Below, in pieces: positions 18,799 through 62,774 of a stretch of 64,000 nucleotides of DNA. Under the pieces are notes generated by a model. It worked only from the letters and a program-made list of their open reading frames with translations. It had not been told where the DNA came from and ran no database searches. A program made the position numbers and the translations under genes. Source of the DNA: Laetmonice hystrix (taxonomy: Eukaryota). Every line of letters starts with the position of its first letter. Positions within the stretch are counted from its first letter, which is position 1. The stretch covers positions 13,888,001 through 13,952,000 of the forward strand of contig OZ249453.1 in the NCBI GenBank assembly GCA_965235115.1. Reading direction: 5' to 3'.

Positions 18799-19156
18799 AC
18801 GTGCCGATTAGCAGGGGAACGTCGAAGAAACCGTATCGGAGAAAAAGGGAAGCAAGCCGCCTGAGTTTCTTTTTGTGTAGTTTTTGTTGAGATGTTGAGA
18901 AGCAGCTGATTACACAGACAGGATTCTTACAGACTCAATGTGGTTCGTGTGGCGGAAACCCTGAGGCGGGAGAACTGTTCGTGCAACACCGAGACATTGG
19001 CATGAAACCTACGACATCTCAAAATGTGTGGTGTTGTCTGTGTTGATAATTAGATAATCCATGTTTATCAGACGTAGCAAAACAGATCAATCCAAAAGGC
19101 GAGGTGCATGCCTTTAGATTATTTACTGGATATAACGTGACGTCAAGAATGGTAGA

Positions 19157-23207: not shown

Positions 23208-23719
23208 TACTATATACTTAATGTGGTGTAATCACCTATTGTACTACTTACTGTGGTGTAATCACCTATTGTACTACTTACTGTGGTGTAATCACCTATT
23301 ATACTACTTACTGTGGTGTAATCACCTATTGTACTACTTACTGTGGTGTAATCACCTATTGTACTACTTACTGTGGTGTAATCACCTATTGTACTACTTA
23401 CTGTGGTGTAATCACCTATTGTACTACTTACTGTGGTGTAATCACCTATTGTACTACTTACTGTGGTGTAATCACCTATTGTACTACTTACTGTGGTGTA
23501 ATCACCTATTGTACTACTTACTGTGGTGTAATCACCTATTGTACTACTTACTGTGGTGTAATCACCTATTATACTACTTACTGTGGTGTAATCACCTATT
23601 GTACTACTTACTGTGGTGTAACCACCTACTGTCTTACTTACTGTCGTGTAATCATCTAATGTAGTACTTACTGTGGTGTAACCACCTATAGTCATTAATT
23701 GTACTACTTACTCTGGTGT
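23208..23719. repeat. 30-bp minisatellite (CTGTGGTGTAATCACCTATTGTACTACTTA)n, ~16 copies
   Basis: Period 30; degenerate at both ends. Confidence 0.95.
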
Positions 23720-30289: not shown

Positions 30290-32143
30290 ATGTTTACATC
30301 TGGGATGACACGTCCGACTTCCAATACAGTGGCAAGCGGCGACTTGTTGCAAACGGTAATTACTTTCGTCACCAAGGCAAACAAGCTGAGGTCGAGCTAG
30401 AAGACGGCTGGGGAAGGGGTCACGAGGTCAAGGTCAGGCTGGAGGTCAAAGGTGGCGATCGCCAACCACAGGGTGTCATGCCTGACGATCAGAGGTTGGA
30501 TAATGAAGACGATGACAGAGGAGCAAAGTCTAAGGACAGGGCCTTGGAATACTGCAATCCTCCCGAGGACATCTCAGGAGGAGCTGAAGGTACGACCTCA
30601 AACAGCCCGGTCTAATTGCAATGATTGCCAGGTTATTAGCATTAATTAAAAATACTCATGATGTATGATCGTCTTAGCATAGTATGCAACACGTCATCAA
30701 ATATAGATCTATGCTGAAAATGTTATCGAGAGAAAGTCGTCCACCTATATCAAAAACACCTGAGGAAATATCGTTTTATTTTAACCTTTTTAATCACAAC
30801 TTCCGTTCTCCCAGACCGATTTTGAAAACCAGAGCTGTGTACATTGTTGGTATTTTTTTGATAACTTGATTAAAAAGTTAATGTGTAACTGACCTTCCTC
30901 ACTTGTTGCCTTCCTGATGACAGGCCAGGTACCGGCCGAGTACAACCTTGAACACGTCCATGCTGTGATCCGTCATGGGGTTCGATCATCCATGTACGCT
31001 GTGCCGGGCTACGAGACCCCTTGGATCCCGTGTGAGGTGATCGAGTCGCTAACCGCCACAGACCACACTGCCCGTTCCTACGTGAAAACTATGAAACGGA
31101 CGTGGGCTGGCCTCGCCCCTGAAAGTCAGGCGTTCCGCTTCGGTCTCTTCCCCCACAGTCGGTACTGTGAGGGCGCCCAGCTCACCGGCCGTGGTGCAAT
31201 GCAACAGATCCGAAACGGTCAGCACCTGCACAACGTCTACAAGAACCGGTGGGGACAGGAGCAACGTAGTCTCAAACCAAACCAAGTGCACGTTTTCTCC
31301 ACTGAATATTCACGAACCTACCAAAGTGCTATCGCTTTTCTGTTTGGACTTCTACCAGATCACAATCCTTCCTCTGTCCCAGTCATGTTCTCCCGTTTCA
31401 CAAACTTTTGCTCAACAAAGCTGACGGGATTAACGTGTGACTGCACAATGGCATACAGGTTAGAGGCAATTATTAAAAAAGAGTATGGAAAACGGTCGAG
31501 GAATAGTACATTACATGCTCACATAAAGAAAGACATATCGAACATCCTTGGTGTACCCAAAAACAAACTCCCTTGGGTGTCTGCACTCTCCGACGTTTTC
31601 AATGGTCACATCTGTCACAACATCAACCTCCCATGTTCACGTGTCAACTCGTCTCTGTGTGTCACGTGGCCGTTAATAGGTAAAGTGTGGGAGTTCCTTG
31701 ACACCAACGGTGCTGCTCAGCTCGCCAGCTACGCCTACCAAAGACAGCAACGTTTGCTGATGCATCCACTTCTGCACATCATCAGCCATCGCATGTACAA
31801 CGTAACGCTTGGCCGTGAGGTGACAAGATTTGTCCTCTACTCGGGTCACGACAAAACCGTCACGCCACTCACAACTGCCCTCGGCTTTCACGACGGAAAG
31901 TGGCCCAGCTTTGCTGCAAGGGTAGTCTTCGAAATGTACAGCAAGTCGGAGAATGACTCCGATAAGGACGTATATTATATCCGTGTACTTTACAATGGCC
32001 AGGATAAAACTCAAATGTTGCGCTTCTGTAAAGGCAAACTCGTCGATGGGTTGTGCCCTTTTGACGTGTTTCAACATTACGTGTTTTATGAAGACCTTCA
32101 ATATTTTGGTAAGAATACCTACCAGGAAGCGTGTATGTTGTGA
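30290..32143 (+). CDS. PXYLP1: 2-phosphoxylose phosphatase 1-like histidine acid phosphatase, copy A (5' coding exon not resolved)
   Basis: Exons 30290-30589 and 30924-32143 (phase 1, GT-AG). RALEYCNPP…EG, RHGVRS, SRTYQS, CHN…LPC, LYSGHD, FAARVVFE, VRVLYNG-like YIRVLYNG and CPF…Y..AC follow the PXYLP1/ACPL2 pattern as recalled. Candidate hydrophobic exon 30114-30213 lacks an in-frame ATG. Confidence 0.88.
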
Positions 32144-35325: not shown

Positions 35326-35529
35326 CGGTACATCGCCCGTGGTAACTTAACCCCCACGAAATTTGGTCGAAAGTATAAGATCCATAGCCCTGACCTTATC
35401 TCTAACCCTTAACCCCGGTCCCTACACCTTCCAAAAACTTATCCCTATCCCATCCCTATCCCTATCCGGGACCTTAACCGGAACCCGTGCCCAAAAACTT
35501 TGTGGGGAATTTACCATTGGGGAATAACG
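35326..35529 (+). mobile_element. ~200-bp dispersed MITE-like repeat; further copies at 39270-39427 (+, partial) and 53343-53525 (-)
   Basis: Shared CACGAAATTTGG…ACCTTATCTCT.ACC..TAACCCCGG.CCCTAC…TGTGGGGAA.TTACC; subterminal inverted motif CCC.TGGTAACTT / AAGTTACCATGGG. Confidence 0.6.
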
Positions 35530-35580
35530 AAAATTTCATAGTACATTGTATCCTCCGCGTCCTAAATGGGCCATCTGGCA

Positions 35581-35869
35581 AGCAGGTGGAAACTGTAATA
35601 CACGTTACACAGCAGGTGGAAACTGTAATACACGTTACACAGCAGGTGGAAACTGTAATACACTTTACACAGCAGGTGAAAACTGTAATACACGTTACAC
35701 AGCAGGTGAAAACTGTAATACACGTTACACAGCAGGTGGAAACTGTAATACACGTTACACAGCAGGTGAAAACTGTAATACACCTTACACAGCAGGTGGA
35801 AACTGTAATACACGTTACACAGCAGGTGAAAACTGTAATACACGTTACACAGCAGGTGGAAACTGTAAT
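35581..35869. repeat. 30-bp minisatellite (GCAGGTGGAAACTGTAATACACGTTACACA)n, ~9.5 copies
   Basis: Period 30 read directly. Confidence 0.95.
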
Positions 35870-36072
35870 AGGCTCACATAATTTGATGTCACAATACGCC
35901 CACACGATGACAACATGTCATAGCCATATAGCCATGACATGAGTCTGCCCCTACAATACTCCCCTACAGCCTTCGTTTGCCCTTCAGCCTTCGACACACA
36001 GACAGCACAGTGTCGCTTCTCCCCGAACACATGTCTGTGTGTACATCACCTGCCATTTTGAAAATAGTTTTG

Positions 36073-36322: not shown

Positions 36323-39047
36323 ATGAGGCGGACCCCAGCGTTTCTTGCCATTGCCTTCTTTCTGGTGGCTGTCATCATTCCGCTGTGTGAGTTAATCAAG
36401 TTCTCCGTAGGCCTATGGGCCCGGTTTTTTAGTTCATTTTTCCAATCTTAAGACTGGAATTTTAAGACTGACTTGTGTTATAGTCTCTCATTGGCTGACC
36501 TCATTTGAAGGACCAGTCAGAAACTCTAAAACAAGAGTTCAGTCTTAAGTTTTGAATCTTAAGACTCAGTTTGAAACTAAAAACCAGGGCCAGGATTGGG
36601 TTGCTTGACGTGGGCGAGGAATGGACACTCTCTTTAGGACGAGTACAGATATTATACTGAAATTTACAGGAGGAAATGCTTAGAAACCTTTTATATTGTT
36701 GATAGAAGCAAAGGGTCTTTTTTGAAAAGTTCGTGCCCCTCTCCATTCTATATTATATTATGGACCTTGTAACTGAACTGTTTGACAGGGTGAGAACATT
36801 AAATTCAGGGCAAAGTTATTTATATCATGAGATTAATTTGCAATTATATGGCAGATATTGCATACCATTCAGCAAAAAGTCATATAAAATTGTGTTCTGA
36901 CGATGAAAAGACTGCCTTGATCAGGTCTGGGCTTCTAAATGGGGTTCGTTTTAAGCTTTGAACTGCGGTTGACAACTTTTAGCTTTGAAAGTTGTGTGGT
37001 TCTTGCGAATCAGTCGCAGAGTGACATCAAGTACATTGTTTTAAAACCATATTACATATATTTTCCCCATCCTCAATCTACCTTCGTAACTTTTATTATG
37101 TCTGGTTTTCTGCAGATTTTTACATCTCAGAATTAAAGTCTGACCTCCGGTATACTGGAACGCCAAAGTTTCCTGAAAACGGAATCTACCTGCGTCGCCA
37201 TGACAACGATCTTAACGCAACGCTGAATGGCGGCGAGCCCGAGGTCAGAGACCCTGGGGAAACGTCAAACATGGGGGTCACTGCACCGGAAGGAGTTATG
37301 GAAGCGAGGATAGGAAAGAGGAGAGCGCTGGAGTACTGCAATCCACCAAATTCAATATCAAGGGGAGATGAAGGTATTTAAACAATCTTGGCATTCTGTT
37401 CACTCAACTTTACGTAAATACGAGAGCGTGCAATGGTGGTCTATGCCATGTCCGTATCTAAAGTCATCTTCACGACGAAAAGAAAATATCGGACGGTAAA
37501 AGGGTCCGATTGTGTTATTGTCTCGCGGGTCCCCACGGGAACCGTCCCCACTGGAACTGTCCCCATGGGAACTGTCCCCACGTGGACCGTCCCCACGGGA
37601 ACCGTCCGCACTGGAACTGTACCGTCCCCATGGGAACTGCCTTACGCTACGAAAACATCATAAATTGGAACGGCTTAAATTGTTCTTTACAGAGGATTCT
37701 TTACTTCCGAATGTACTGAGACCACCAAATATTATATTAGGAACATGTTCTCTCGATGAGCGGTTCAGATAAGCTGGATTATGCTGCTATAAGACTGGTA
37801 TTATCTTTAGAAATACTAACGTGTGTGTTTTAATGTCTGGGTCACCAGGCAAGGTTCCAGGAGCGTACGTACTGGAGCATGTCCACGTGGTTGTACGGCA
37901 TGGTGCTCGGTCCCCGATGCAGCCGATGCCAGACCTGCTGCCGACGACACTCCCGTGTCACATCGACCCGGGAATGGCCGCCACTGACAGCATCGTCAAA
38001 TCTTACCTTGTGTCCATGAAGTCTCTAGCAGCCAGTCGGAAATTTCTCTTTGGATTGTACCCGCGCAGAAAGTTTTGCAAAGATGCTAGTCTAACTGGTC
38101 TTGGTGCCGTCCAGCACATCAAGAATGGGCAATATCTACATGAGGTGTATAGTAAAAAATGGCGTCGGAATAAGGTCGATATGAAACCCAACCAAGTCAA
38201 AGTGTTTACTACGAAATATTCCCGAACTTTCCAAAGTGCCATGGCCTTTCTCTTCGGGCTTCTGGGCGGTTTTAATTTATCCTCTGTTCCAATCACATTT
38301 TCCAACTCCTTGCACTTTTGCTTGGGATCAAATTGTCGCTGTCCTCTGGCCCAAAGCTTAGATACAATAATTCAAAGGGAAAGGGTAAGGTGGGAGGCCA
38401 GGAGCAGTCCGTTACAGGATCACATAAAGAAAGAAATATCGGACATCCTTGGTGTACCCAAAAACAAACTCCCTTGGGTGTCTGCGCTCTCCGACGTTTT
38501 CAATGGTCACATCTGTCACAACATCAACCTCCCATGTTCACGTGTTAACTCGTCTCTGTGTGTCACGTGGCCGTTAATAGGTAAAGTGTGGGAGTTCCTT
38601 GACACCAACGGTGCTGCTCAGCTCGCCAGTTACGCCTACCAAAGACAGCAACGTTTGCTGATGCATCCACTTCTGCACATCATCAGCCATCGCATGTACA
38701 ACGTAACGCTTGGCCGTGAGGTGACAAGATTTGTCCTCTACTCGGGTCACGACAAAACCGTCACGCCACTCACAACTGCTCTCGGCTTTCACGACGGAAA
38801 GTGGCCCAGCTTTGCTGCAAGGGTAGTCTTCGAAATGTACAGCAAGTCGGAGAATGACTCAGATAATGACGTATATTATATCCGTGTCCTTTACAATGGC
38901 CAGGATAAAACTCAAATGTTGCGCTTCTGTAAAGGCAAACTCGTCGATGGCTTGTGCCCTTTTGAGGCTTTTCGTCATTATATTTTATATGAAGATATTC
39001 AGCATTTTGGAAATAAATCTTACAAAGAAGCTTGTATGGTAAGATAG
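36323..39047 (+). CDS. PXYLP1: 2-phosphoxylose phosphatase 1-like histidine acid phosphatase, copy B (complete, ~506 aa)
   Basis: Exons 36323-36386 (MRRTPAFLAIAFFLVAVIIPL, type II signal-anchor), 37116-37373 and 37849-39047; phases match (1521 nt); TACTAAC branch-like site at 37814; RHGARSP and SGHD catalytic motifs. Confidence 0.92.
36418..36591. mobile_element. Short MITE-like element in intron 1 of PXYLP1 copy B
   Basis: Imperfect TIRs GGCCCGGTTTTTTAGTTCA / TGAAACTAAAAACCAGGGCC with internal TCTTAAGACT inverted motifs; TSD unclear. Confidence 0.45.
37525..37637. repeat. 15-bp tandem repeat (GTCCCCACGGGAACC-like), ~7 copies, in intron 2 of copy B
   Basis: Read directly. Confidence 0.8.
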
Positions 39048-39429
39048 AACAGAATATTTGTTTTCTGTTTCCCTCTCCGTCTTGTACTACCATTTATTGA
39101 TTTATAGTTGATCGCAATAATCTCCATACATGACGCCAATGTATTGACGGTAACTTGCCCTTTAAAAAAATTAATTTAATGCTTCCTAACCCGGTATTTT
39201 TGAAGTCAAAAAAGAGAGTAACGGTAAGAATGGTATTGCCAGTACATTTGATTCAGAACAGTTACTGTACGGTACCCACGAAATTTGGTTGAAAGTAAAA
39301 ATCCATGACCTTATCTCTGACCACTAACCCCGGACCCTACACATCCCAAAAACATTTCCCTATCCTGTCCCTATCCCTGAGTTTAACCCTAACCCCTGCC
39401 CAGAAAAAACTGTGGGGAAGGTAACCAAC

Positions 39430-39569
39430 GCATGGAACATAACCAGGACAGAGAGAAGGGGTTGTTTGTACAAAGATCCTGACGGAAATATTGCTAACTC
39501 TTTCACTAGTCTCCGGTTCACATTGAAGCGAAGCAGCACCTATTAACAGTCCTTCATGTTGTGTTACCG
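39430..39569 (+). pseudogene. Remnant of a fourth Cys-loop receptor copy (beta9-loop C-beta10 segment of exon 4)
   Basis: 39430-39545 translates to AWNITRTERRGCLYKDPDGNIANSFTSLRFTLKRSSTY then stop, homologous to 42760-42875; the following AGTCCTTCATG…TACCG resembles the exon-4 end, implying TM1-TM2 were deleted. Confidence 0.85.
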
Positions 39570-41120: not shown

Positions 41121-43811
41121 ATGTCGGAGGTAGGCCTATTCCTGTTTGTCGTTTTGGTTCTGACTGTAACTGGTGGTGAGGTTATGACGTCCCAAAGATT
41201 GAAGACGGAACGGGATCTCGTTCTTAATCTGACGTCACAGTATACTCGATATGCACGACCCGTCAAGGATCCAACTACAGCTGTTCAGGTGAAGGTGAAG
41301 ATTATATCCAAGAGGGTGATAGATGTGGTAAGTTAACACCTTTCTAAATTTCAGTATAGGCCTACTTTGGCCAAATCTGGCCGAGAAGCCCTGCTCATTT
41401 TGGTAATAAATAGGTAGAAGAGCGCACAGATCGATCAGGGCCCGGTTCACAAACAAAGTCAAGTCAATTTTAATTGGCTTGAAATCCATTTTAACCAATC
41501 AGGTTCAAGTAAAATTGATTTCAAGTCAATTAAAATTGACTTGACTTTGTTTGTGAACCGGGCCCAAAGCTACCCTTTGAGCATTAAAAGCTTTGAAATT
41601 CTTTGTTCTCACTGAGTGAGGGCTCTTCTTGCTAGAGGACTTTGCTGCGCGCACTGAGGCCTATGCTCCGCTCAGCTGGTATTATAGTCCTAGATCTTTT
41701 TCCTATCTTTTGTTACTTTTTTCAAAATAACAAAATAAGGGAATACAACAGGTAGGCCTATTTTGCCTCTTTTCAACGATGTTGCGGTGTCTTCCTTTTG
41801 TATGCCTATGGGATGTTCCTCTGTCTAAGTGCTAAATTTCCATTCATGTGGGCTTGCATTGGGACACATTAAGTAGGCATAGGCCTACATTACGCGCTTT
41901 GATAACGCTCATATTTCTTTCACAACTTTCAGTTGGATGCAGAAAGCACGATGCAGTGGGACGGATGGATTACACTTGTGAGCATTTCATGGTTATCTAT
42001 TTTTATAGTACTCAGGAAGTCGCATACGCCTCTGCACGCCCCGTTGGCAGCGACCTTCATGCTATACCTGCTAGAGTATTGAAATGATAGTCATGTCAAA
42101 TGTGTAGACTATTCGTTTATATGTGACCGTCTGTTGTATGTTAAGATCTGGAAAGACGAATTTCTGGTGTGGAACCCCGATGAATTTTCCAATGTCCAGA
42201 AACTGGGGGTATCCTCAGACGTGGTGTGGACACCCCCACTTTGTCTTGCTAATGGGTAAGGATCTCGAGAGTTTGTGGGTGTGGGTTTGGCGTGTAAGCC
42301 TAAGGGTACGTGTGGGTGGGGGTGGCTGTATGTATGTATGTTTATATGCGTACGAAAACATAAGCATGTGTATAACTGAATTTTAGATATGGATATGATT
42401 AAAGACAATCCACTCATACTGTAATTTTAATATTTTGAAAAGCCACCCACTGAAGAAAGACATTAATATCATCGTACTGTGTTTATATCGTTCCCGCCGC
42501 CTACTTATACACGCATAGCGCAGAGGATTTCAACACTCTAACAGCCGTCGACAGACATCTGTTTGCCTCAGTTGATTACACAGGACAAGTGGCGATGGCA
42601 TGGGTTAATAGCGTTAAAACCCGATGCGACATAGATGTTCGCTCCTATCCATTTGACATCCAGGTTTGTGAAGTACACATCTTTGGATGTGATGGGTACG
42701 ATGCAAAGCAGATGTATCTGAACTCCAATATAAGAACATTCCCAACGGAAGGCTTAAGTGCATGGAACATAACTAAGACGGAGATACGGGATTGTTTTTA
42801 CACAGATCCTGACGGAAATATTACTAGCTCTTTCACTTTTCTCCGGTTCACATTGAAGCGAAGCAGCACCTATTACCTGGCCAACATGATCATTCCGTCT
42901 GGGATACTGTCCCTGTTCCTCCCGGCTCAGTTCCTCCTCCCACCCGAGTCCGGAGAACGGGTGTCCATGGGACTCAGTCTGCTCGTGGCCAGCAATGTCT
43001 TCCTGCTTCTCACAGCTCAGAATGTACCACGATCCACCCAAGTCCTTCCCTTCATGAGTATGTATACCGTAGTAAAGGTTTCCAAAGTGTGCTGACCTTT
43101 CTGTCTGCACCCAAGTGACATCACTCTATATACCCGTAACGGTGAGGGTCGTAGCCTGTAGGCTGTAGTCTTGAGACCTACCAGAATATTGCTACACTTA
43201 CAAAATGAAAATATTGTTCCATGTGAGAAACTGATCTTAAAAAAAGAAAATAAAGAAAAAAACAATGAGGTCAGTTAGTGTTGAAAGTAATTATTACTTA
43301 TTCTATATTTTCTATATCTCTAGCTGTGGTCCTAATTTTCTTCATGGCGGTCAACATGATATCGGTATTAATATCGATCCTCATGTCAAGAATCAAGCTG
43401 CGGCCTACAGAATCCCGATTACCCCATGCTGTCAGGAACATCCTAAGGACCCTCGGTTACAAACATGCCTCATCGGTCCACCCAAAAACCACCTCACCAA
43501 CTCTCCCCGGGTCAAAGGTAGGAAAAGATTGCGACTCTTCAGACTCTGCACCAACTCTGCTAGATTCTCCTGGAACCTCGGCGAGGCGCCCGGTAGACAA
43601 AGGGGGATTCTCGGTAAATGACGTCATTCTGACGTCTGACGTCATCCAAAAGAAGTGGGACATCCTGTGTTCTTTCCTTGATGTGTTCTTCATGATGCTG
43701 ACCATCACCTTGCTCACCGTCGTCCCTATCACACTCTATGTTGTACTCACTGCCGATCGTTCATCGACAGTGCCATGGAAGTTTAAAGATGAAATATGCC
43801 AAAGATATTAG
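41121..43811 (+). CDS. Cys-loop ligand-gated ion channel subunit, nAChR-like non-alpha, copy 1 (~462 aa)
   Basis: Exons 41121-41327, 41933-41977, 42146-42255, 42519-43057, 43324-43811 (1389 nt, phases consistent; 45- and 110-nt exons typical of nAChR genes). Signal peptide, RPV, WxD.FLxWNP, Cys-loop CDIDVRSYPFDIQVC, TM1-TM4, PESGER before TM2. Confidence 0.93.
41439..41564. mobile_element. 126-bp foldback MITE (PIF/Harbinger-like), 48-bp TIRs, 3-bp TSD CAG/CAA
   Basis: GGCCCGGTTCACAAACAAAGTCAAGTC… inverted with one mismatch; absent from the paralogous intron sites (GACCAGAGCT at ~45567, GACCAGTGCT at ~49754). Confidence 0.8.
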
Positions 43812-44984
43812 AATGTACGTGATTTTTTTTTAAACTGCATGTGCAGAAAGTGTGACCCTGAGAATCTTTCTTGCGATGTATCCCCTCGGCGAATCATCCT
43901 CGCATGTATCGACCCTGTCTGCTGAAGAGGAGTGAGGAAGACGTTCTTACATTGACATTGTCCTCGTCTCATTAACTCTTCTTTTGGTTGAGCAGGTTCC
44001 AATCGTGCTGTATGGAATGCTCGACTTCGATTTGCATTATGAAAACGAGCTGCAATACGAGAAGCTTCAATCCTTAACTTCATTTGAAATTTCACGTTGA
44101 TATGTGACATTACGTGGATTGAATAGTGCTCCTGCATGTTTTCTGCTTCATCTTCTTTTGTTTCACTATGAAGCGCAACATGTAAATATTTCATGAGAAT
44201 TGTAACTAGATCTCCGTTAGTTGTGTGGAACACCAGTTAAAAAAAAGTCGGTAAATGTTGTTAGTGATTTACAGATGGGGCACCGATTAGACTCTAGGCC
44301 GACTTTAGTGCAGGCCTCGTCACGTCTTCTATGGGGGTAACTACCGCGCATGATCAGCTAACTCCACGGTTGATTTAACCCTAGTTTCTCAAATAAACTT
44401 CTGACAACGGTGTAAAGACTCCCTCACTTTTAGACTGACTCAAGCTTTCACATAACCGACGGACAAAAATCATTTTCCATTAGGACTATTTTCAATTTGT
44501 TTAAACTTCGATCCATCCTTTGCTTCCAGGGATTTAAATAAGCAGTAACTGATCAGCCACCTAATCTGCATCTGTCAACAATTCTACTCTTCTTGTTAAC
44601 TCTCTACCAAATGCTTCTGTTGATTTACTTCATGGTCCGCCCAAATGACTTGTAAATATTCTGTGCCTTGAAAGCAATTCATAAAGGAGAAATGTCATTG
44701 TCAATCGTCAAATTTTGTTTTCCATGGTTGCTACGTGACCGATATTTACCCTTCATGTGGAGTTGACGCTCAGCCAATAAAGCCATGCGTTATAGGCCAT
44801 GTACTTTGTTGACTATTTGTAGGAGCGATATTTATTCACGACTTTAGATTACCCATTGTAAAGCTGATCTCTGATATTATGACAGATTCATGTTTGCATT
44901 GGTGTGCTCTGCTTTGATATAAGACGAGCATTTGTAAACTTTGGAGTCAGATTTTGAAGCTGAAGAAAGCCTAGCAGAAGAACC

Positions 44985-47900
44985 ATGTCGGCGGTATTCC
45001 TGATTATCCTTTTGGTTCTGACAATAACTGGTGGTGAGGTTATGACGTCACAAAATTTGAAGACGGAACGAGACCTCCTTCTTAATCTGACGTCACAGTA
45101 TACTCGATATGTACGACCTGTCAAGGATCCGGCTACAACTGTTCAGGTTCACGTGAAGGTTACATCCAACAAGGTGATAGATGTGGTAAGTTAACACCTT
45201 TCTCAATTTCCGTATAGGGAGTGTCTATTTACCCAGCGGCTGGTTAAGTAAGGGAGAACGAGTTTGACTAACTAACTAGGCTAGCTAAGAAATTCAGTGA
45301 AGGCTAGGGGTAGGGATAGGGTTAGCATCAGCTTTATTTAATTTTCAGCCCGAACTAAATGGAAAGAGACATTTCTTCAGAGGTCTTATCAAAGCGCACT
45401 ATTTGACCAGCAGATATAATCCAATAGAATTCATGATTCTTGGTCACATGACCAATCTTCTGCTGGTTCAATAGCTTCTGCCTTCAGTATAGGCCTACTT
45501 TGGCCAATTCTGGCAGAAAGGCCCTGCTCATTTGGTTATAAATAGGCTACAAGATCACACAGATGGACCAGAGCTACCTTATTGAGCACTAAAAGCTATG
45601 GAACTCTTTGATCTCACTGAATGAGGACTCTTATTGTTAGAGGACTTTGCTGAGCGTAGGCCTACTTAGGCCTATGCTCCGCTCAGCTGGTTTTAGTCCT
45701 ATCTTTGTCCTCGCCTCACTTATGAGTAAATGGGGCAATTAAAATTACAAAATATGGGAATACAACAGGTAGGCCTATTTGCCCTCTTTTCAACGATGTT
45801 GCTGCATCTTCCGTATGGGATGTTCATCTGTCTCAGTGCTAAATTTCCATTGCTGTGGGCTTGCATTGGGACACATTAAGTAGGCATAGGCCTATGTTAC
45901 GCCTTTGATAATGCTCATATATTTCTTTCACAACTTGCAGTCGGATGCAGAAAGCACGATGCAGTGGGATGGATGGATTACACTTGTGAGCATTTCTTGG
46001 TTATCTATTTTTGGAATATGTACTCAGGAAGTCGCATACGCCTCTGCACGCCCCGTTGGCAGCGACCAACATGAATGCTATACCTGTTAGAGTATTGAAA
46101 TGATAGTCATGTCAAATGAGTATTCTTTTATATGTGACCGTCTGTTGTATGTTAAGTTCTGGAAAGACGAATTTCTGGTGTGGAACCCAGATGAATTTTC
46201 CAATGTCCAGAAGCTGGGAGTATCCTCAGACATGGTGTGGACACCCCCACTTTGTCTGGCTAATGGGTAAGGAGTGTGTGTGTGGGCGTGGGCGTGGGCA
46301 TTAGCAACAGGGTGTGGGTGTATGCATGTAGGGCCTAACAGTATTTTTCTTTTGAAATGCACGGGCATCAGGGGTAACCCAATTACTTTGACAATGTCCC
46401 TAAAGAGAAAAGTTGTATAGTCCTCTACAGGAATCGAACCCAGGCCCTAAGATTACTGCACCCATTCGCATAGCATAAGGTGTCGACATCCATGCCCGTG
46501 TGGGTGGGTGTGGGTGTATGTATGTTTATATGTGTACACAAACATAAGCATGTGCATGGCTGAATTTTGGATATGGAGAGTGATTAAAGACAATCCACTC
46601 ATATGGTAATTTGTAATATTTTGAAAAGCCACCCACTGAAGAAAGACATTAATTTTATGGTACTCTGTTTATATCGTTCCCGCCACCTACTTATATTTAG
46701 CGCGGAGGATTTCAACACTCTGACAGCCGTCGACAGACATCTGTTGGCCTCAGTTAATTACACAGGAGAAGTGGCGATGGCATGGGTTAATAGCGTCAAA
46801 ACCCGATGCGACATAGATGTTCGCTCCTATCCATTTGACATCCAGGTTTGTGAAGTACAGATCTTTGGATGTAACGGATACGATGCAAAGCAGATTTATC
46901 TGATCTCCAGTATCACATCCCCAACGGAAGACTTAAGCGAATGGGACATAACCAGGACAGAGAGAAGGGATTGTTTGTTCACAGATCCTGACGAAAATAT
47001 TACTAGCTCTTTCACTATTCTCCGGTTCACATTGAAGCGAAGCAGCACCTATTACCTGGCCAACATGATCATTCCGTCTGGGATACTGTCCCTGTTCCTC
47101 CCAGCTCAGTTCCTCCTCCCACCCGAGTCCGGAGAACGGGTGTCTATGGGACTCAGTCTGCTTGTGGCCAGCAATGTCTTCCTGCTCCTCACAGCTCAGA
47201 ATGTACCACGATCCACCAAAGTCCTTCCCTTCATGGGTATGTATACCGTAGTAAAGGTTTCCAATGTGTGCTGTCCTTTCTGTCTGCACCCAAGTGACAT
47301 CACTGTGCATATCCGTAACGGTGAGGGTCGTAGCCTGTATAGGCTGTTAATCTTGAGACATTCCAGAATAGTGTTACACTTACAAAATGAAAATATTGTT
47401 CCATGTGAGAAACTGATCTTAAAAAAAGAAAATAAAGAAAAAAACAATGAGGTCAGTTGGCGTTGAAAGTAATATTACTTATTCTATATTTTCTATATCT
47501 CTAGCCGTGGCCCTAATTTTCTTCATGGCAGTCAACATGATATCGGTATCAATATCGATCCTCCTGTCAAGAATCAAGCTGCGACCTCCAGAATCCCGCC
47601 TCCCCCACACTGTCAGGAACATCCTAAGGACCCTCGGTTACAAACATGCCTCATCGGTCCACCCAAAAAACACCTCACCAACTCTCTCCAAGTCAGAGGT
47701 GGCAAAGGTTTGCGACTCTACAGACTCTGTACCAACTCTGCCAGATTCTCCTGGAACCTCGGCAAGGCAGCCGGTAGACAAAGGGGGATTCTCGGTAAAT
47801 GACGTCATCCTGACGTCTGACGTCATCCGAAAGGAGTGGGACATCCTGTGTTCTTTCCTTGATTTGTTCTTCATGATGCTGACTATCATCTTGCTCACCG

Positions 47901-47992
47901 TGGTCCCTATCACACTCTATGTTGTACTCACTGCCGATCGTTCATCGATAGTCCCATGGAAGTTTGAAGATGAAATATGCAAAAGATATTAG
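44985..47992 (+). CDS. Cys-loop ligand-gated ion channel subunit, nAChR-like non-alpha, copy 2 (~459 aa)
   Basis: Exons 44985-45185, 45941-45985, 46157-46266, 46701-47236, 47505-47992 (1380 nt); same motifs and intron phases as copy 1. Confidence 0.93.
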
Positions 47993-48522
47993 AATTTATT
48001 TGTTTTTTTAAACTGCATGTGCAGAAAGTGTGACCCTGAGAATCTTTCTTGCGATGTATCCCCTCGGCAAATCATCCTCGCATGTATCGACCCTGTCTGC
48101 TGAAGATGAGTGAGGAAGGCGTTCTTACATTGACATTGTCCTCGTCTCATTAACTCTTCTTTTGGTTGCGCAGGTTCCAATCGTGCTGTACGGAATGCTC
48201 GATTTCGATTTGCATTCTAAAGACAAGCTGCGATACGAGAAGCTTCAATCCTTAACTTTATTTGAAATTTCACATTGACATATGACATTACGTGGATTGA
48301 TTAATGCTCCTGCATGTTTTCTGCTTCATCTTCTTTTGTTTCACTATGAAGCGCAACATGTATATATTTTATGAGAATTGTAACTAGATCTCCGTTAGTT
48401 TTGTGTAACACCAGTTAAAAAAACCTCGGTAAATGTTGTGAGTGGTTTACAGATGGTGCACCAATTAGACTCTAGGCTGACTTTAGTGCAGACCTCGTCA
48501 CGTCTTCTTTGGCGGTAACTAC

Positions 48523-48773
48523 GCGAGTTATCAAAGGTGCTGGCTCATGACACCTCGGACCATCACCTCACACTGCTGCGGTCCGGGTTCGATCCCCGGC
48601 CAGGGCTGCATGTGTGAAAGGTTTGTCAGTCAGTTCCTTCCCGAAGGTCGGTGGTTTCCTCCGGGCACTCCGGTTTCCTCCACCAAGAAAAACTGACTTT
48701 CATCATCATCTTCACCGCCGTGATATGACCCTGGCTGTTGCAAGGCGTAAAACCCCAAATACCCACCCACCCA
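48523..48773 (+). mobile_element. tRNA-derived SINE with V-SINE-like core and (ACCC)n tail
   Basis: Box B GGGTTCGATCCCC (48585-48597); core GGTTTCCTCCGGGCACTCCGGTTTCCTCCACC; tail ACCCACCCACCC; the paralogous spacer at ~44340 is empty (GTAACTACCGCGCATG). Confidence 0.8.
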
Positions 48774-49448
48774 CCGCGCATGATCAGCTAACTCCACGGT
48801 TGATTTAACCCTAGTTTCTCAAATAAATGTCTGACAACGGTGTAAAGACTCGCTCACTTTCAGACTGACTCAAGCTTTTCTAAAGCAAGGAACGTTCACA
48901 TAAATGACGAAAAATATCATTTTCCATTAGGACTATTTTCAATTTGTTTAAACTTCTATCCATCCTTTGCTCCCATGGATCTGAGTATGCAGTAACTGAT
49001 CAGCCACCCTGTTTGACTTACTAATGGATGATCGCTGCATCTGTCAACAATTCTGCTCTTCTTGTTTACTCTCTACCAAATGCTTCTGTTGATTTACTTC
49101 ATAGTCCGCCCAGATGACTTGTAAATATTCTGTGCCTTGAAAGCAATTCATAAACGAGAAATGTCATTGTCAATCGTCAAATTTAGTTTTCCATGGTTGC
49201 TAGGTGACGGATATTTTTCCTTCATGTGGGGTTGACGTTCAGCCAATAAAGCCGCGTTATAGACCAACATGTACTTTGTTAACTATTTGTAGCAGCCATA
49301 TTTATTGACGGCTTTAGATTAGCCGTTGTAATGTTGATGTCTGATATTATGACTGATTCATGTTTGTATTGGTGTGCTCCGCTATGATATAAGACGAGTA
49401 AACGTTGGAGTCAGATTTTGAAGCTGAAGAAGGCCTACCAGAAGGACC

Positions 49449-51872
49449 ATGTCGTCGGTATTCCTGATTATCCTTTTGGTTCTGACCGTAACTGGTAGTG
49501 TGGTTATGACTTCACAAAGTTTGAAGACGGAACGAGACCTCCTTCTTAATCTGACGTCACAGTATACTCGATATGTACGACCAGTCAAGGATCCAACTAC
49601 AACTGTTCAGGTTCTCATGAAGGTTTCATCCAACAAGGTGATAGATGTGGTAAGGTAATACCTTTCTCAATTTCAGTATAGGCCTACTTTGGCCAATTCT
49701 GGCAGAGGAGCCCTGCTCATTTGGTAATAAATAGGTACAAGAGCACATAGATGGACCAGTGCTACCTCATTGAGCACTTAAAGCTATGGAATTATTTGTT
49801 TTCACCGAGTGAGGACTCTTGTTGTTAGAGGACTTTGCTGAGCGCACTTATGCTCTGCTCAACTAGCATTAGTATAGTGTCTTCCTTTTGTAGGCCTATG
49901 GGATGTTCTTCTGTCTAAGTGCTATATTTCCATTAATGCGGGCTTGCATTGGGACACGTTAATTAGGCATAGGCCTACATAGGTTACGCGATTCAATAAC
50001 TCGTATTTCTTTCACAACTTGCAGTCGGATGCAGAAAGCACGATGCATTGGGACGGATGGATTACACTTGTGAGCATTTCATGGTTATCTATTTTTATAA
50101 TGTGTACTCAGGAAGTCGCATACACCTCTGCATGCCCCGTTGGCAGCGCCCTTCATGTTATATCTGCTATAGAGTATTGAAATGATAGTCATGTCAAAAT
50201 GTGTATTCGTTTATATATATGACCGTCTGTTGTATGTTAAGATCTGGAAAGACGAATTTCTCGTGTGGAACCCCGATGAATTTTCCAATGTCCAGAAACT
50301 GGTAGTATCCTCAGACGTGGTGTGGACACCCCCACTTTGTCTTGCTAATGGGTAAGGAGTGTGTGTGGGTGTGGGCGTGAGCATTAGCAACAGGGTGTGG
50401 GAGGGTGTGTATGTGTAGGTGCGTACAGAACAATAAGCATGCCCATGACTGAATTTTGGATATGGAGAGTGAGTAAAGACAATCCACTCTTATTGTAATT
50501 TTAATATTTTGAAAAGCCGCCCACTGAAGAAAGACAATAATTTTATCGTACTATGTTTCCCACTGCCTACTTACATGTAGCGCGGAGGATTTCAACAGTC
50601 CGACAGCCGTCGACAGACATCTGTTTGCCTCAGTTGATTACACAGGACAAGTGGCGATGGCATGGGTTAATAGTGTTAAAACCCGATGTGACATAGATGT
50701 TCGCTCCTATCCGTTCGACATCCAGGTTTGTGAGGTACAGATCTTTGGATGTGGGTATGATAGAAAGCAGATGTATCTGAACTCCAGCATAACACAATAC
50801 CAAACGGAAGACTTAAGCGCGTGGAACATAACTAAGATGGAGAGACGGGATTGTTTTTACACAGATCCTGTCAGAAATATTATTAGCTCTTTCACTATTC
50901 TCCGGTTCACACTGAAGCGAAGCAGCACCTATTACCTGGCCAACCTGATCATTCCGTCTGGGATACTGTCCCTGTTCCTCCCGGCTCAGTTCCTCCTCCC
51001 ACCCGAGTCCGGAGAACGGGTGTCCATGGGACTCAGTCTGCTCGTGGCCAGCAATGTCTTCCTGCTCCTCACGGCTCAGAATGTACCCCGATCCACCCAA
51101 GTCCTTCCCTTCATGAGTATGTATACCGTAGTAAAGGTTTCCAAAGTGTGCTGTCTTTTCTGTCTGCACCCAAGTGACATCACTGTGTATATCCGTAACG
51201 GTGAGGGTCGTAGCCTGTAGGCTGTAGTCTTGAGACCTACCAGAATATTGCTACACTTACAAAATGAAAATATTGTTCCATGTGAGAAACTGATCTTAAA
51301 AAAAGAAAAAAACAATGAGGTCAGTTGGCGTTGACGTTAAAATTAATACCGGTATTACTTATTCCATATTTTCTATATCTCTAGCCGTGGTCCTAATTTT
51401 CTTCATGGCGGTCAACATGATATCGGTATCAATATCGATCCTCTTGTCAAGAATCAAGCTGCGACCTCCAGAATGCCGCCTCCCCCACGCTCTCAGGAAC
51501 ATCCTAAGGACCCTCGGTTACAAACGTGCCTCATCGGTCCACCCAAAATCCACCTCACCAACTCTCTCTAGGTCAGAGGTAGCAAAAGATTGCGACTCTT
51601 CAGACTCTGCACCAACTCTGCCAGATTCTCCTGGAACCTCGGCAAGGCGGCCGGTAGACAAAGGGGGAGTCCTGGTAAATGTAGTCATCCTGACGTCTGA
51701 CGTCATCCGAAAGGAGTGGGACATCCTGTGTTCTTTCCTTGATGTGTTCTTCATGATGCTGACTATCATCTTGCTCGCCGTCGTCCCTATATCACTCTAT
51801 GTTGTACTCACTGCCGATCGTTCATCGACAGTGCCATGGAAATATGAGGCACGTTGTCCGAGGTATAATTAA
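49449..51872 (+). CDS. Cys-loop ligand-gated ion channel subunit, nAChR-like non-alpha, copy 3 (~459 aa)
   Basis: Exons 49449-49649, 50025-50069, 50242-50351, 50581-51116, 51385-51872 (1380 nt); same motifs and phases; distinct C-terminal tail KYEARCPRYN. Confidence 0.93.
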
Positions 51873-56800: not shown

Positions 56801-59800
56801 GTTCCATGTTGTATGAAAAAGTGTTTATTTCACGTATCAGTTGCATTGTCTTTTTCGGTCGGGAGTCTCGAGATGTGGCTAAAGAAATTCTGATGTGGCT
56901 ACAGGATTTGGTTACCCATTTAGCCACGGTGGCTAAAGAAGATGATTGGCAAGAGGAAGACCAGTGAAGGCACTGGTTTCCAGGTATTAGTTTAAGGAAA
57001 ATGATACCAGTTTTACACCCTGTGCTAGAATGGAGACAGAAAATGGTGATGAGAAATCAGATTATTACCTCTGCCACTTCCTTGGAGGATTTCTTTAATC
57101 CCTTTTCTCTCTCCTTCCCCAACTGTTGTTTAAGGTTAGTAATCCTCTCTTCCGACAATCTCATCTCCTGCTTGTGTTCCTCACCAGCTGCTTCCCTATA
57201 GTACAATCATTAACAATAAATCAATTTCCTACTGTCTAAGGAAATTATTATACTGTCTATTTGGTATTATACATAAAATAATAATGCTTGATTTACATGT
57301 AGATTAATTATCCTTGTGCTGAATGCAATAAGTAGTTAGCTCTCCCAAATGTAATGAACATATGGTTTAATTATCCCATAAATTAATGATGTTATACACA
57401 CCTGGCAGTCTGCAGTTGCTCCAGTAGGTAGGACTTTTTCTCCAGCTGGTCCTGAAGTGTGTCTACAGTAGCCTGCAGTTGGCCGTTACTCCTTACAACT
57501 GTTTCTAAGGAACTAGCCATTTTGGCGTTGTCAGTCTTACACTGCTGTAGGGCCATTCTCAACGGTTCAATCTGACAAACAAAAAATACCTTACCTTGAA
57601 TAAGTATCCATAATAAATCTACATTCTTTTAGACAATACTACTTAAAGTTTACTTTACATTTCCTTCCAGTGGGCCAGACATCATCCTCAGTGTAACCAT
57701 CTTCAAACGTTTTTCTTGAACTTATTAAAATTAACTTATATATGTTTGTATCAGACGTACTTCCCTCGTCTCCAGTGTTTCCATGGAAACCAGTTTGGAT
57801 TGCAGGTTGTCATATTCCTTCTGCATCTGTCTCATGGCATGTTGGGTTTCAGTTCTACAAAAGGAAGATTTGAGAAAAAAAAAATTGAAGACTCGAATAA
57901 AGATTTGAAAAAATATGCAATATTTTGATAGGAGGCCGAGCCATTAGTCTGCGGTTACCAGTACTCCTCTTAAATGTGATCTTCGTTGTATCGTGGATTG
58001 TTTATTAATTATAACGGTGACTTACCTTTCATGTGCAAGTTTGTTGATCTGGGAGTCCTTACGTCCTAGTTCTATTTGAAGCCCTTCTATCGTCACCTGG
58101 AGTGACGAGTGCGACTGCATCACGCTTTCTAACGTGCTGGCGACCTTCTTATTGTCATCACGAGCATCACCAAGGTTACGCTGCATCCCCAACAACTGTT
58201 AACATTGAACCATGAACGAATTTCTGCTTTAATGACATCTACTAACCTTTGTCCATAAAACATCAAACTGGTCAGCTGATCTATTGCAGAAGGCAGGGGC
58301 AATGACCGTCAAAATCATACACTAGGTGGCGCCTCCTGTTGCTTCAACGTAAGATACCCGAGTGGTATGTGAAAGAGATGAAATCAGGTTGAAATAAAAA
58401 TTTGTGAAAATGTTTTTGAGACCTTCCGTTTGTCACGCTCTTCAATGGCCTCGACGTGTTGCAGCAGACGCTGGTTCTCCCTGATCGCCTCGTCTCGAGC
58501 TGCGATGGCCAGCCGAAAGTCTTCCTCCTTTCTCTCGCCAGTCAGCTGTGCCTGTTTGATTTGACTATCCAAGCGCTGCATGGCCATGCGGCAACTATTT
58601 AACTCGGCCTGGCACTACACAGACAACATAGCCACGAAAACTATTTATATTTATGTACGATAACATCACTTTTTACTCATTTCCATTCTCCAAAGATTAT
58701 TGTGAAGCAGAAAATTATTTCAAAGCCTGGAGGACATTTCTCTTTTGACGAGTGACATTATGTCCTTAACCAATACTAAATTAAAATTGCAACAACAATC
58801 TGGTTTGGAGATTTTATCAGTAAGAACTAATTGCTATTATCTCCATCATAAATAATCCAGATAAAATGTTTTATTCTTAATGCATGCCAGTTGGAATGAA
58901 GAGATTTCACCTTTTTGTAATTTGTCTCCAATGTGGAGGTCATCTTACGAGACTGGGAGAGGTCAGACTTGGCTGATGCTAAATTCTCCATGTCATGTTG
59001 TAGTTCCTCTACCCTACTCTGTAAGCGTCCCTTGTCATAAGCCAGTTTGTTCTTCTGCTCCATCATTGTTGCCATAGCCTTCTCTACCTGACCAGCTGCT
59101 GCCTGTGTTTGAAAAGAAAAATCTTTTTTATTTCCATTATTATTGGTGCCAAAGTTTTATGAGATCCATAAACTTCCGACGTGTAATTTTGGGATTTTTA
59201 GGAGATGTGTTAAGTTTTGCCGGTTAAACAAGGCGGTGTCTTTATGTTACAAGAGTTTAGGCACTGCCAAGAAATACTCACTGCTTGTTCCTCCACAGCA
59301 CCGAGTCTCTCCAGTAGCCGGGCGTTCTCTTGCTCCAGTTGTTTACATGCCTGCTGGGTGGTCTCACGGTCCAGCTCTACCTGCTGGAGTTGTGACTGTA
59401 GGCGGCTTCTCTCCTCGGCCATGTCGTCCACTGCCTGGTTGACCTGGAAATACAGTCTTCTGCTATCAAAATCAACAATTTCATCCAAGATATCCCACAC
59501 ATCCTCTTGGAGGAAAGATTTACTGGTTCATCTCATTCCCGAGCACTGTGACCTCACCTCATCCAGTAGGTTGTCTTTGTCTCGAACAGTTTTTTCTTTG
59601 TCCGACTCCTTCAGACGTAGTTCCTCCCGTAGTCTCGCCACATCCTCCTTGTGTCGGACTCTGACCTCCTCCAGGTCGACATCCCGTCTCTGGAGTTTCT
59701 CCTGAAGGTCAGTGACCTTTGACTCCAGCTGAGCACTACAACCACATGGTAAGATACATTAGGTACAATCAGGGTTGAACCCAATATTTTAAACGAACCT

Positions 59801-62462
59801 CTCTCAAAGTTAGAATCATAATATTAGCGATTTGTTCTTCTTAAAGTAACACAAATATTATGTCATCCTTCATTGGCTTGAATTTCCTGACTCTGACCCT
59901 CAAGGCTTGAACTAAATCTGTTTTTAAGATCAGACTCCCTCTCCGATTCTCATGTCAAAAGTGGGAGGGGCATATTGCTAATTAGTCTGCCCGGATTTAG
60001 CTCTCTAATATTGAACTTAATTTACAAATTCTACCAAAAACAGACTTAATGACTGAACAAAATCAACAAGGAATTTGTGATGTAAAGTTTCAAAAATCAT
60101 GCATCACCAGCATGGATTTCATGATGTAAAATTTCAAAGTCTGACTTTAAACTCACCATGAGGACAGTGCTTGGCCCTTCTCGCGACTCTCGGCACGTAG
60201 CTTCTCCTCCAACTGTTTTATATGTTCATCACCTTGAACCTTTCCTGCCAGATCTGTCTTTTTGGACTGTAAATCATCAACAATGTCAACACTTAATGAT
60301 TGGTCATAATGGGCGGGGGCCACAGGGTCATTTGTGACACATAACAATCAACATTATTTCATATTAAAAAATATCTTTCTCACTTCCAGTTCTTCTTCAT
60401 ACTTGGCAATAAGTTGAGCATTTTGAGAGGCTGCCGATTTCATGGCTTCATACAGTCGCTTGTTCTCCTTTTCCAGTTGTTCATGCGTGTCCTGAAAAAA
60501 TTTCACAGAATTCACACAAATGATTGTTTTTTGAATTAAACATGAGATAGTTTAAGACTAAGATATTGGTTTCTACTGTTATGGTGGCTAGTGATTGGCT
60601 TTGTGATCTATGAATCACAATCTCATAAAATTTCAGTTGGTGCCGAGCCTACAGACCTGTTTGTCATCAACAAGTTTCTGAGTCTGGTCGAGTTGCTGAA
60701 TGAGCTCATTGTAACGGGTTCTCATTTTGTTTATCTCCACCATCAAGTATGCCTTGTCCTCCTCTAACGATTCCACCTTACGTATGGAATCCCCTGGAAG
60801 ATACACACAGATCAAGTTTTGTAGGACCAGATGTTTATAGATTTTTATAAGGTCAAATCTGGTGTCTTCAGTATTCAGAATGAGAGATTTCCTTACATTA
60901 CAATTACATTTACAAGTTGTAACACAGATTTCCTTACATTACAATTACATTTACAAGTTGTAACACAGATTTCCTTACATTACAATTACAAGTTGTAACA
61001 CAGATTTCCTTACATTACAATTACATTTACAAGTTGTAACACAGATTTCCTTACATTACAATTACAAGTTGTAACACAGAGATTACCAGTGAGTATGGGG
61101 TTGGTACAATCTTAAGGTATAAAATCCAAGAAATGTGATACTGTTCAATAATGCTGCGAATCTATAATTTATATATTTCTAGTCTCCACACGAGACAAAC
61201 TGGAAACTGCCTTACCTGTCTCTGACTCCATCTTAACGATGTGTTCCTCTGCTTTATGCCGTCGATACCGTTCCCTCTCAGCTTCCTCGCTTGCCCTAAC
61301 ACAATCTCGTTTTAATCCGGCACAGGTAGTGTTCAGGTTTTTTAACTGGAATAAAGATCAAGAAATTTGAAGCTATTATTTTTTCATATATTACCTACCC
61401 CTAAAACATCCCTGTAATTCTCATTATGTGTCAGCCTTATTTTTTGAAAATTATGTTTGTGATACGTGGCTTGTTGTCAGACTTATTGAAGATGTAAGCA
61501 TAATATGTTCTAGGGTGCTGTCTCTAGTGTATTTTGAAACAAATTTATACAACTTTGTAAATTTATAGACATTTTCAATGTCATAATTTTGTAAATCTCC
61601 TACCCATAACCTCCGCAGCAACCTCACCTCATCTTGCTCCTTCACAACGACTGCTTCCATATCCTGGATTCGACTGAGCAGTGTGCTGTGAGACTCTTCT
61701 AGGCTTGCTCGTAGACTTGACTCACGGGCAAGCTCCTCGCGCAACTCATTTACACGACGACTCAGTTTCTGTTTGGTCACCTTCAGATCTTCTAACAGAA
61801 TGGATGCTTCAGACTGGACGAAAATAGATCATTTGTTTTCTCATTAATACTAGTATAAAAATGAAAGTTTTTATTCTAAAATCTACCAAGTTAGAATGAA
61901 AGTTTACCTTGCCAGAAGTAGCCACCTCTAAAGCCTCCTGAAGACGACGGACATCATCCTGGGCACGCCTCCTTTCCTCTTGAGCCTCTTTGCAGTCTTT
62001 CCGTGACTGAACCAAGTCGCGACTCGCTTTGTTGAGCTCTTTTTCATAAGCATCTGCTGTAACTGAAAGCTTTTCACTTGCTGAAAGCTTCTGTTCTTTG
62101 CTCATTTCAAGTTCTGCTTGTGCCCTGAGTAGATTTAATTTCATGGTTTGTATTGCACTTTCCATTTTACAAACCCGCGAAACAAGCGTTTCATAATTCT
62201 GGTGTAAAGTGCTTGGATCAGCGAGTCTGATTTTGTATGGGCTAACGGTGCTGCCTCCCACTCCGGTCCCCTTACCACTTTTTTTTAATGCGTCATCACT
62301 TTGGCTGCTTTCAAACCCCATTGTGGCCAGTTGATCAGCAAGCTGTTTTGCATCTTCTTCAGCTGACACTAGGCGGCATTGTAGGATGTTTAGGGTTTCT
62401 TGAGTATGCCCACCTTCTACTGGCAAAGGCTCAACTGATGGATGCATTATCTTGGACTCCAT
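53856..62462 (-). CDS. CCDC150: Coiled-coil domain-containing protein 150 orthologue (~1176 aa, ~23 coding exons)
   Basis: Exons (- strand): 62462-61908, 61813-61628, 61345-61216, 60793-60657, 60491-60384, 60266-60157, 59735-59558, 59443-59282, 59102-58911, 58614-58423, 58195-58026, 57854-57761, 57571-57402, 57195-57069, 56601-56407, 56161-56093, 55978-55817, 55095-54929, 54800-54692, 54569-54423, 54283-54190, and tentatively 54140-54090 and 53881-53856. All GT-AG with matching phases. Motifs ETLNILQCRL, NYETLVSRVCKMES, QIELGRKDSQI, IEPLR, AHEWFKSKFDTLQQEL match recalled vertebrate CCDC150. The last two exons are uncertain. Confidence 0.85.
60885..61080. repeat. 41/35-bp intronic tandem repeat (AGATTTCCTTACATTACAATTACATTTACAAGTTGTAACAC), ~5 copies
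   Basis: Read directly; lies in a CCDC150 intron. Confidence 0.9.
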
Positions 62463-62774
62463 GTTTGGTTTCACATTCCAAGATAACCAATTACTGATTT
62501 GTCATTGTATCCAAGAACTGAAATTGTAAAAATAAAATAAACTTTCCTTATTACCATGCAACAGCCTATTAAAATTCTTCTGAAGTTCTAACGTTAGACT
62601 TAGCCAGATCTAACTGGTTTGTGTAGTCTTCACAGTTTAAAGCTAAATGCAACAATCCAGCTACCGTATACCTTCCCACATGCCTTATACAATAAAGAAT
62701 AACATCAGCAATAAATGCAGGTCAATAGGTTTTACATAAACGAGAATGCCAACCTTAAACTACGAGTACCCTAC

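Follow-up and report, generated by a model that had tools for sequence, protein, structure and literature searches.

Nicotinic acetylcholine receptors (nAChRs) have expanded in lophotrochozoans, where they form tandem arrays in which many members lack the principal residues that bind acetylcholine (ACh) (PMC6896357). In molluscs these expansions are largely intronless retrocopies, and in the oyster the principal sites are fully conserved in only 13 of 132 nAChR genes (Jiao et al., 2019, PMC6896357). The chemotactile receptors (CRs) of cephalopods (CRT1, PDB 8eis / 9e6b) are likewise derived from nAChRs and arranged in tandem; the ACh signature has been lost, the pocket loops diversify and the pocket is hydrophobic. 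Alpo4 of the annelid Alvinella pompejana (PDB 8bx5), a Cys-loop receptor that falls between nAChRs on the one hand and 5-HT3 receptors on the other, lacks the vicinal Cys pair of loop C, stands isolated in trees and is an orphan as to its ligand (PMC10338036). Such losses also mark the ordinary non-alpha subunits, of which muscle delta (PDB 2bg9_C, 6uwz_B) has neither the loop-B Trp nor the vicinal Cys pair. Here, we describe a cluster of six genes for nicotinic-type subunits in Laetmonice hystrix. Three of them lie within a stretch of 64,000 nucleotides of a 627 Mb assembly (C30:13888001-13952000, C30 being contig OZ249453.1); this whole stretch is called the window, and all positions below refer to it unless they carry the prefix C30.

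The cluster shares something with each of these systems. As in the lophotrochozoan expansions, its genes stand in tandem and have lost the principal ACh-binding residues; in contrast to the molluscan retrocopies, they keep five exons each, and their clade adds an invariant Cys in loop A and another in loop B. The pocket loops diversify as they do in the CRs, yet CRT1 is no closer to the cluster in sequence than ordinary nAChRs are, and the pocket substitutions are polar or charged where the CR pocket is hydrophobic. Alpo4, likewise an orphan without the vicinal Cys pair, is only modestly similar (52.8 bits on the main exon, exon 4) and keeps the aromatics F103, W159, Y199, Y205 and W65 (PMC10338036), whereas the cluster has lost all four principal-face positions. 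Muscle delta is the best match among solved structures (E 4e-17), and both it and the cluster keep the loop D Trp and the GE(K/R) motif. However, identity to delta is about 30%, the complementary residues of loop E are not kept, there are six tandem copies and there is no orthology.

The channel machinery has been retained throughout. A sequence-only reading of the window had credited its three genes with a signal peptide, a Cys-loop, four transmembrane segments (TM1 to TM4) and a GER motif, and Pfam, a hydropathy scan and motif translation agree on all of these. In every copy, exon 4 scores above Pfam's cut-off for Neur_chan_LBD (PF02931) and Neur_chan_memb (PF02932), the former matching exon 3 as well, and the hydropathy scan of the spliced models finds an N-terminal signal segment followed by TM1, TM2, TM3 and TM4. 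The Cys-loop, CDIDVRSYPFDIQVC, has a 13-spaced Cys pair flanking xPFD and is invariant in the six copies. Among the gating elements, YPFD in the Cys-loop, the Arg of the pre-M1 KR, the M1 Pro and the M2-M3 Pro are present, and the pore keeps the -1' Glu within GER together with Ser at 2' and 6'. A Glu at -1', in the context GE[KR] where M2 ends on the cytoplasmic side, is what confers cation selectivity in the nAChR / 5-HT3 branch. From alpha7 the pore differs in Val for Leu at 9', Gln for Glu at 20' and Asn at 12'. It is invariant in its entirety among the six copies, and SGERVSMG is common to them and to the closest paralogue in the genome, which is 55% identical. By sequence, the products are subunits of a pentameric ligand-gated ion channel (pLGIC) and belong, within the Cys-loop superfamily, to its nicotinic / 5-HT3 branch; the channel is predicted to be selective for cations.

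When exon 4 was compared with solved structures by HMMER, Torpedo delta and human alpha7 came out on top (E about 4e-17, ~66 bits), with alpha3, beta2, Alpo4 (52.8 bits), 5-HT3A (49) and octopus CRT1 (48.9) below them. The exon that carries loop A matched 5-HT3A best (35.8 bits, E 3.5e-8), then alpha1 (30.4) and CRT1 (27.8). A relation to the cephalopod CRs, which the sequence-only reading had entertained, is not borne out by this ranking. In a word-indexed protein search the main exon gave no match at E <= 1e-5. Relatives did turn up when HMMER was run exhaustively against 1.84 billion representative proteins, though of the 150 best listed not one exceeds 40% identity. An atlas look-up returned generic Neur_chan clusters only.

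The ligand pocket is where the cluster departs from canonical receptors. For the four positions of the ACh-binding aromatic box and their neighbors, the loop A exon was aligned ungapped to alpha1 residues 60-94, and the remaining positions were taken from the HMMER alignment to alpha7; the loop C alignment, anchored on a conserved Pro, is the least certain of the four. Loop A reads WTPPLCLAN in place of WxPDIxLYN, so that alpha1 Trp86 is kept while Asp89 has become Pro, Val91 Cys and Tyr93 Ala. The loop B motif is FGCDGY in copy 1, FGCNGY in copy 2 and FGCGY in copy 3. Cys stands there for Thr148, and Trp149 is replaced by Asp in copies 1 and 6 and by Asn in copy 2, the residue opposite the loop-B Trp in the alpha7 alignment, and is deleted in copies 3-5; Tyr151 is kept. 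Loop C has a single Cys and no vicinal pair. Leu-Phe lies opposite the pair in the alpha7 alignment, Cys192/193 being read as Phe-Tyr or Leu-Phe with the lone Cys one position earlier, and Tyr190 corresponds to Asp (HMMER alignment) or Arg (hand alignment), Tyr198 to Asp or Val. The complementary face keeps Trp55 of loop D in six of six copies, as the DGW at position 12 of a 45-bp exon, and in loop E alpha7 Leu109, Gln117 and Leu119 are replaced by Ser, Ala and Ala (HMMER alignment). The losses first noticed in loops A, B and C, and the survival of the loop D Trp, are thus all upheld by alignment. With these substitutions (Asp/Asn, Arg, Asp) the pocket would now be polar or charged, not hydrophobic, and canonical binding of ACh at the products' own principal face would not be possible.

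A second peculiarity of the extracellular domain is its Cys content. Six extracellular Cys are invariant in the six copies: the Cys-loop pair, one each in loops A, B and C, and a sixth in the tail at the C terminus. In copy 1 the last four are Cys117 (loop A), Cys178 (loop B), Cys213 (loop C) and Cys459 (tail). The 55% paralogue shares those of loop C and the tail and has neither the loop A nor the loop B Cys. Among 63 full-length database relatives that were aligned, none has the loop A Cys, and in only one, P0076, is the loop B position a Cys. Canonical receptors have a hydrogen bond from Asp89 of loop A to the loop B backbone at residues 148-150. In the cluster this Asp is Pro, and Cys are found at 91, on the same strand face, and at 148; a disulfide between loops A and B that replaces the Asp89 contact is plausible.

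The window genes, modeled from six-frame translation and intron alignment, lie on the + strand at 41121-43811 (copy 1), 44985-47992 (copy 2) and 49449-51872 (copy 3). Each has five exons separated by GT-AG introns, and the proteins of all six copies are 458-462 amino acids (aa) long. Exon 1 (201 or 207 bp) encodes the signal peptide, the N-terminal helix and beta1 and ends on VIDV in phase 0. It spans 41121..41327 in copy 1, where the ATG is at 41121, GTAAGT follows VIDV and the Neur_chan_LBD match is weak, 44985..45185 in copy 2 and 49449..49649 in copy 3. Exon 2, which carries loop D, is 45 bp long, reads (S/L)DAESTM(Q/H)WDGWITL between a CAG acceptor and a GTGAGC donor, and is kept in six of six copies; it was detected only once the three first introns had been aligned. 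Its positions are 41933..41977 (copy 1, ending in QWDGWITL), 45941..45985 (copy 2, SDAESTMQWDGWITL, with DGW) and 50025..50069 (copy 3). Exon 3 (110 bp) runs from beta2 to loop A and terminates in WTPPLCLAN. It lies at 42146..42255 in copy 1 (AAG acceptor, GTAAGG donor, Neur_chan_LBD E 2.4e-8), at 46157..46266 in copy 2 (loop A at 46238-46264) and at 50242..50351 in copy 3. A 45-bp and a 110-bp exon at such positions are the classical layout of an nAChR gene.

Exon 4 (533-539 bp) contains loop E, the Cys-loop, loops B, F and C, TM1 and TM2. In copy 1 it spans 42519..43057, with FGCDGY in loop B, the GER of TM2, both Pfam domains and a GTATGT donor. In copy 2 (46701..47236) the Cys-loop is at 46807-46851, loop B (FGCNGY) at 46864-46881, loop C (RDCLFTDPD) at 46966-46992 and GER at 47131-47139, and in copy 3 (50581..51116) loop B is shorter by one residue (FGC-GY). 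Exon 5 (488 bp) supplies TM3, an intracellular loop of ~85 residues, TM4, a 20-residue tail with its Cys and the stop codon, at 43324..43811 (copy 1, TCTCTAG acceptor, intron phase as in the 55% paralogue), 47505..47992 (copy 2) and 51385..51872 (copy 3). Its start had to be chosen between two acceptors. With GGTCAG, which takes in ITYSIFSISLA, copies 1 and 5 appear frameshifted. A polypyrimidine acceptor ending in TTTTCTATATCTCTAG, 50-60 nt downstream, gives an exon 5 of 488 nt and open frames in six of six copies, and the 55% paralogue has an intron before TM3 at the identical codon and phase. This acceptor was preferred because of the uniform exon length, the open frames and the matching paralogue intron. 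It follows that the 1-nt and 2-nt indels upstream become ordinary, harmless intron indels, that TM3 starts directly after LPFM, and that ITYSIFSISLA, formerly taken as the start of TM3, is intronic.

What had been described as a tandem cluster of three is half of a larger arrangement. The three genes in the window are confirmed, and three more stand inverted just past its end, on the minus strand at C30:13956439-13958858, C30:13960536-13962941 and C30:13964120-13966669. The two triplets face one another across ~16 kb, in which lies an unrelated multi-exon coiled-coil gene (58830-62501, - strand). Mutually closest are the outer copies 1 and 6 (synonymous divergence, dS, 0.109) and the inner copies 3 and 4 (dS 0.108), and the flanks outside the genes match too, in mirror order. 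Such a pairing would be expected if an array of three genes had been duplicated in inverted orientation. Elsewhere the similarity between copies is mosaic, which makes gene conversion likely and dS unfit for dating. Across all copies dS is 0.11-0.16. A lineage-restricted expansion, as had been proposed, is supported, and it is a recent one; over the main exon, the 150 best hits listed include no protein above 40% identity. A relic of exon 4 (39433..39543, + strand, ~37 codons, 78% identical to copy 2) adjoins the cluster, and the longer genome-search match around it, at about 39427-39561, contains a TAA.

The six copies show the marks of purifying selection. Reading frames are intact in all six under one shared splice model. 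Within the 1.39 kb of exon the copies differ by 6 indel events, every one a multiple of three; the introns, of similar total length, have 65, mostly not multiples of three and some of them only a few bases upstream of exon 5. The ratio of nonsynonymous to synonymous divergence (dN/dS) is 0.36-0.51 between pairs, and neutrality is rejected in 15 of 15 pairs (p 2e-6 to 1.6e-3; the pairs are non-independent). By region, the ratio of nonsynonymous to synonymous differences (pN/pS) is 0.11 in the loop A exon, 0.14 in TM1-TM2, 0.28 from loop E to beta7 and 0.62 across loops B, F and C, and about 1.0 in the 15-residue beta1-beta2 strand; these values were computed with the earlier exon 5 model, which leaves the segments quoted unaffected. 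Three runs that cover the locus act as DNA unitigs, with introns covered and no exon-exon joints, and they have no indel at the site of the apparent frameshift in copy 1. The description of the genes as intact holds by reading frames and selection, which are its whole basis, and the six genes are real and probably functional.

Within the genome, whose pLGIC loci run to dozens (at least 57 exon matches), the nearest relative is the 55% paralogue, a single copy at G000:C30:7155840-7159963 (- strand; loci L007 / L032), 6.8 Mb from the cluster on the same chromosome. Its TM1-TM2 is near-identical to that of the cluster, it is without the loop-B Trp, Leu takes the place of the Trp in its loop D, and its last residue is a Cys. 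The next-best 23 paralogues all keep the loop-B Trp, many with the alpha-type Cys pair in loop C, which makes the loss specific to the cluster clade. In a tree of 176 sequences, the cluster groups with the 55% paralogue and two open reading frames (ORFs) of one other assembly (35-36% identity) with a Shimodaira-Hasegawa-like approximate likelihood ratio test (SH-aLRT) value of 98. Both ORFs share the TM1-TM2 signature and are without the loop-B Trp, and the nearest named neighbors in the tree are the annelid Owenia and the nemertean Tubulanus. Among the 63 aligned relatives, several are without both the loop-B Trp and the loop-A Tyr. As a separate observation, four alpha-like paralogues (L018, L021, L026 and L027, on C19 and C2 of the same genome) have the loop C Cys pair and the loop-B Trp, no Glu at -1', and an M1-M2 loop shortened by two residues (TP--GQKV vs PxxSGEK); judged by these features, they may be anion-selective nicotinic-type subunits.

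The reading we prefer, and to which we would give about an even chance, is that these are recently amplified, functional genes for orphan cation-channel subunits for which ACh is no ligand at their own principal face, with tuning through loops B, F and C. Pore and gating have been kept and the orthosteric principal face has been rebuilt, the four box positions going to Pro/Ala, to Asp, Asn or a gap, to Asp or Arg, and to Asp/Val. The subunits would most likely form channels alone or with one another, gating would be by another ligand, probably a polar or charged one, and the six copies would differ in their tuning via loops B, F and C. For a family that stands in tandem and diversifies fast, receptor-like birth and death is a better fit than the role of a housekeeping structural subunit. 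Several points weigh against this. Aromatics persist near the pocket, namely the Tyr after loop B, Phe/Tyr at the tip of loop C and a Trp in loop E, and a rebuilt cation-binding site may therefore be present. Values of dN/dS near 0.45 are relaxed for a nicotinic-type receptor. A search of indexed runs for RNA from the organism found none, there being only three runs, from one sample and of unrecorded kind. Box loss is, moreover, common in spiralian expansions and in muscle delta, and so is by itself no proof of a non-cholinergic ligand. The step first taken from box loss to such a ligand can accordingly be kept in part: canonical ACh binding is lost at the subunits' own face, and similar losses are seen in Torpedo delta, in the database relatives and in the oyster genes.

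The same loss would also be seen if the six genes encoded lineage-specific non-alpha subunits, structural or complementary, within ACh-gated heteromers formed with the genome's alpha-type subunits. They would then contribute at most a complementary face, like muscle beta, delta, gamma and epsilon or neuronal beta3 and alpha5. We regard this as possible, if somewhat doubtful. That the best solved-structure match is Torpedo delta, itself without the loop-B Trp, speaks for it and counts against our preferred reading, as box loss is a mark of ordinary non-alpha subunits. The vicinal Cys pair is absent and the loop D Trp is kept in six of six copies, as such a role would have it, and the many paralogues with the loop C Cys pair and the loop-B Trp are possible partners. 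However, the loop E residues of a complementary face have become Ser, Ala and Ala, and the 55% paralogue has Leu in place of the loop D Trp. Six near-identical tandem copies that vary mainly in loops B, F and C would be unusual for structural subunits, and the 150 best hits listed out of 1.84 billion representatives include no 1:1 orthologue above 40% identity.

A bolder version of the preferred reading would have an annelid/nemertean lineage independently making, out of a nicotinic-type channel, a small and quickly diversifying receptor family for a non-cholinergic, possibly external cue, in parallel to the CRs, with a polar or charged pocket braced by two extra disulfides, one between loops A and B and one between loop C and the C-terminal tail. 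We think this unlikely.

It could also be that the copies are young duplicates, silent or drifting toward pseudogenes, whose frames are still open through recency or through gene conversion from one working copy. The relaxed dN/dS, the mosaic similarity that suggests gene conversion, the exon-4 relic next to the cluster and the lack of an RNA run for the organism in the search of indexed runs would all agree with this. Against it, neutrality is rejected in every pair, the six copies have no frameshifting indel in their 1.39 kb of exon as opposed to dozens in the introns, and the six extracellular Cys and the whole pore are invariant; silent duplication is, in our view, improbable. That the genes are orthologues or close kin of the CRs, together forming one ancient spiralian chemosensory clade for hydrophobic contact cues, is highly improbable: PMC11526382, and PMC10338036 on van Giesen 2020, describe the CRs as tandem, nAChR-derived and without ACh-binding residues, as the cluster is, but CRT1 is outscored in bits by delta, alpha7, alpha3 and beta2 in the main-exon comparison and by 5-HT3A and alpha1 in that of the loop A exon, the nearest named neighbors in the tree (which was built without CR sequences) are Owenia and Tubulanus and not cephalopods, and the pocket substitutions are polar or charged.

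Two single-exon genes for PXYLP1-like histidine acid phosphatases (PF00328, 408 aa) lie upstream of the receptors, at 30917-32143 and 37821-39047 on the + strand, their best named match being from Capitella (41%), which points to a spiralian host, probably an annelid or near relative. The two are almost identical over the last ~180 residues and differ in their N-terminal halves, a pattern resembling a gene-conversion tract. On the contig of a PXYLP1 orthologue (80% identity) in a relative, no Neur_chan gene was found within 10 kb, which is weak evidence. Intron 3 of copy 2 has, at ~46339-46512, an insert of ~170 bp with an antisense tRNA-like T-arm, GGAATCGAACCC, that the other copies are without. 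Its unitig depth is about 4e5 compared with about 100 elsewhere, and it is probably a very abundant tRNA-derived short interspersed nuclear element (SINE); ARAGORN called no tRNA gene in the cluster region. Long minisatellite arrays occupy 29-1247, 3726-5117, 6525-10572, 19019-20154, 23179-23695 and 35487-35942 and give rise to spurious ORFs in either strand; the one of 4 kb, at 6.5-10.6 kb, is 56-64% GC with a strong GC skew.

The cluster is a further case of a known class, the orphan nAChR-like subunits of spiralians. To our knowledge, nicotinic-like subunits whose function is unknown number in the hundreds in spiralian genomes, and ligands have been assigned only for the cephalopod CRs. For de-orphanization the cluster offers a compact case, with four box residues gone, pore and gating intact, and the differences between copies centered on loops B, F and C. 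If its subunits were indeed sensory or non-cholinergic, they would represent a second, independent recruitment of a neurotransmitter-gated channel for a new ligand.

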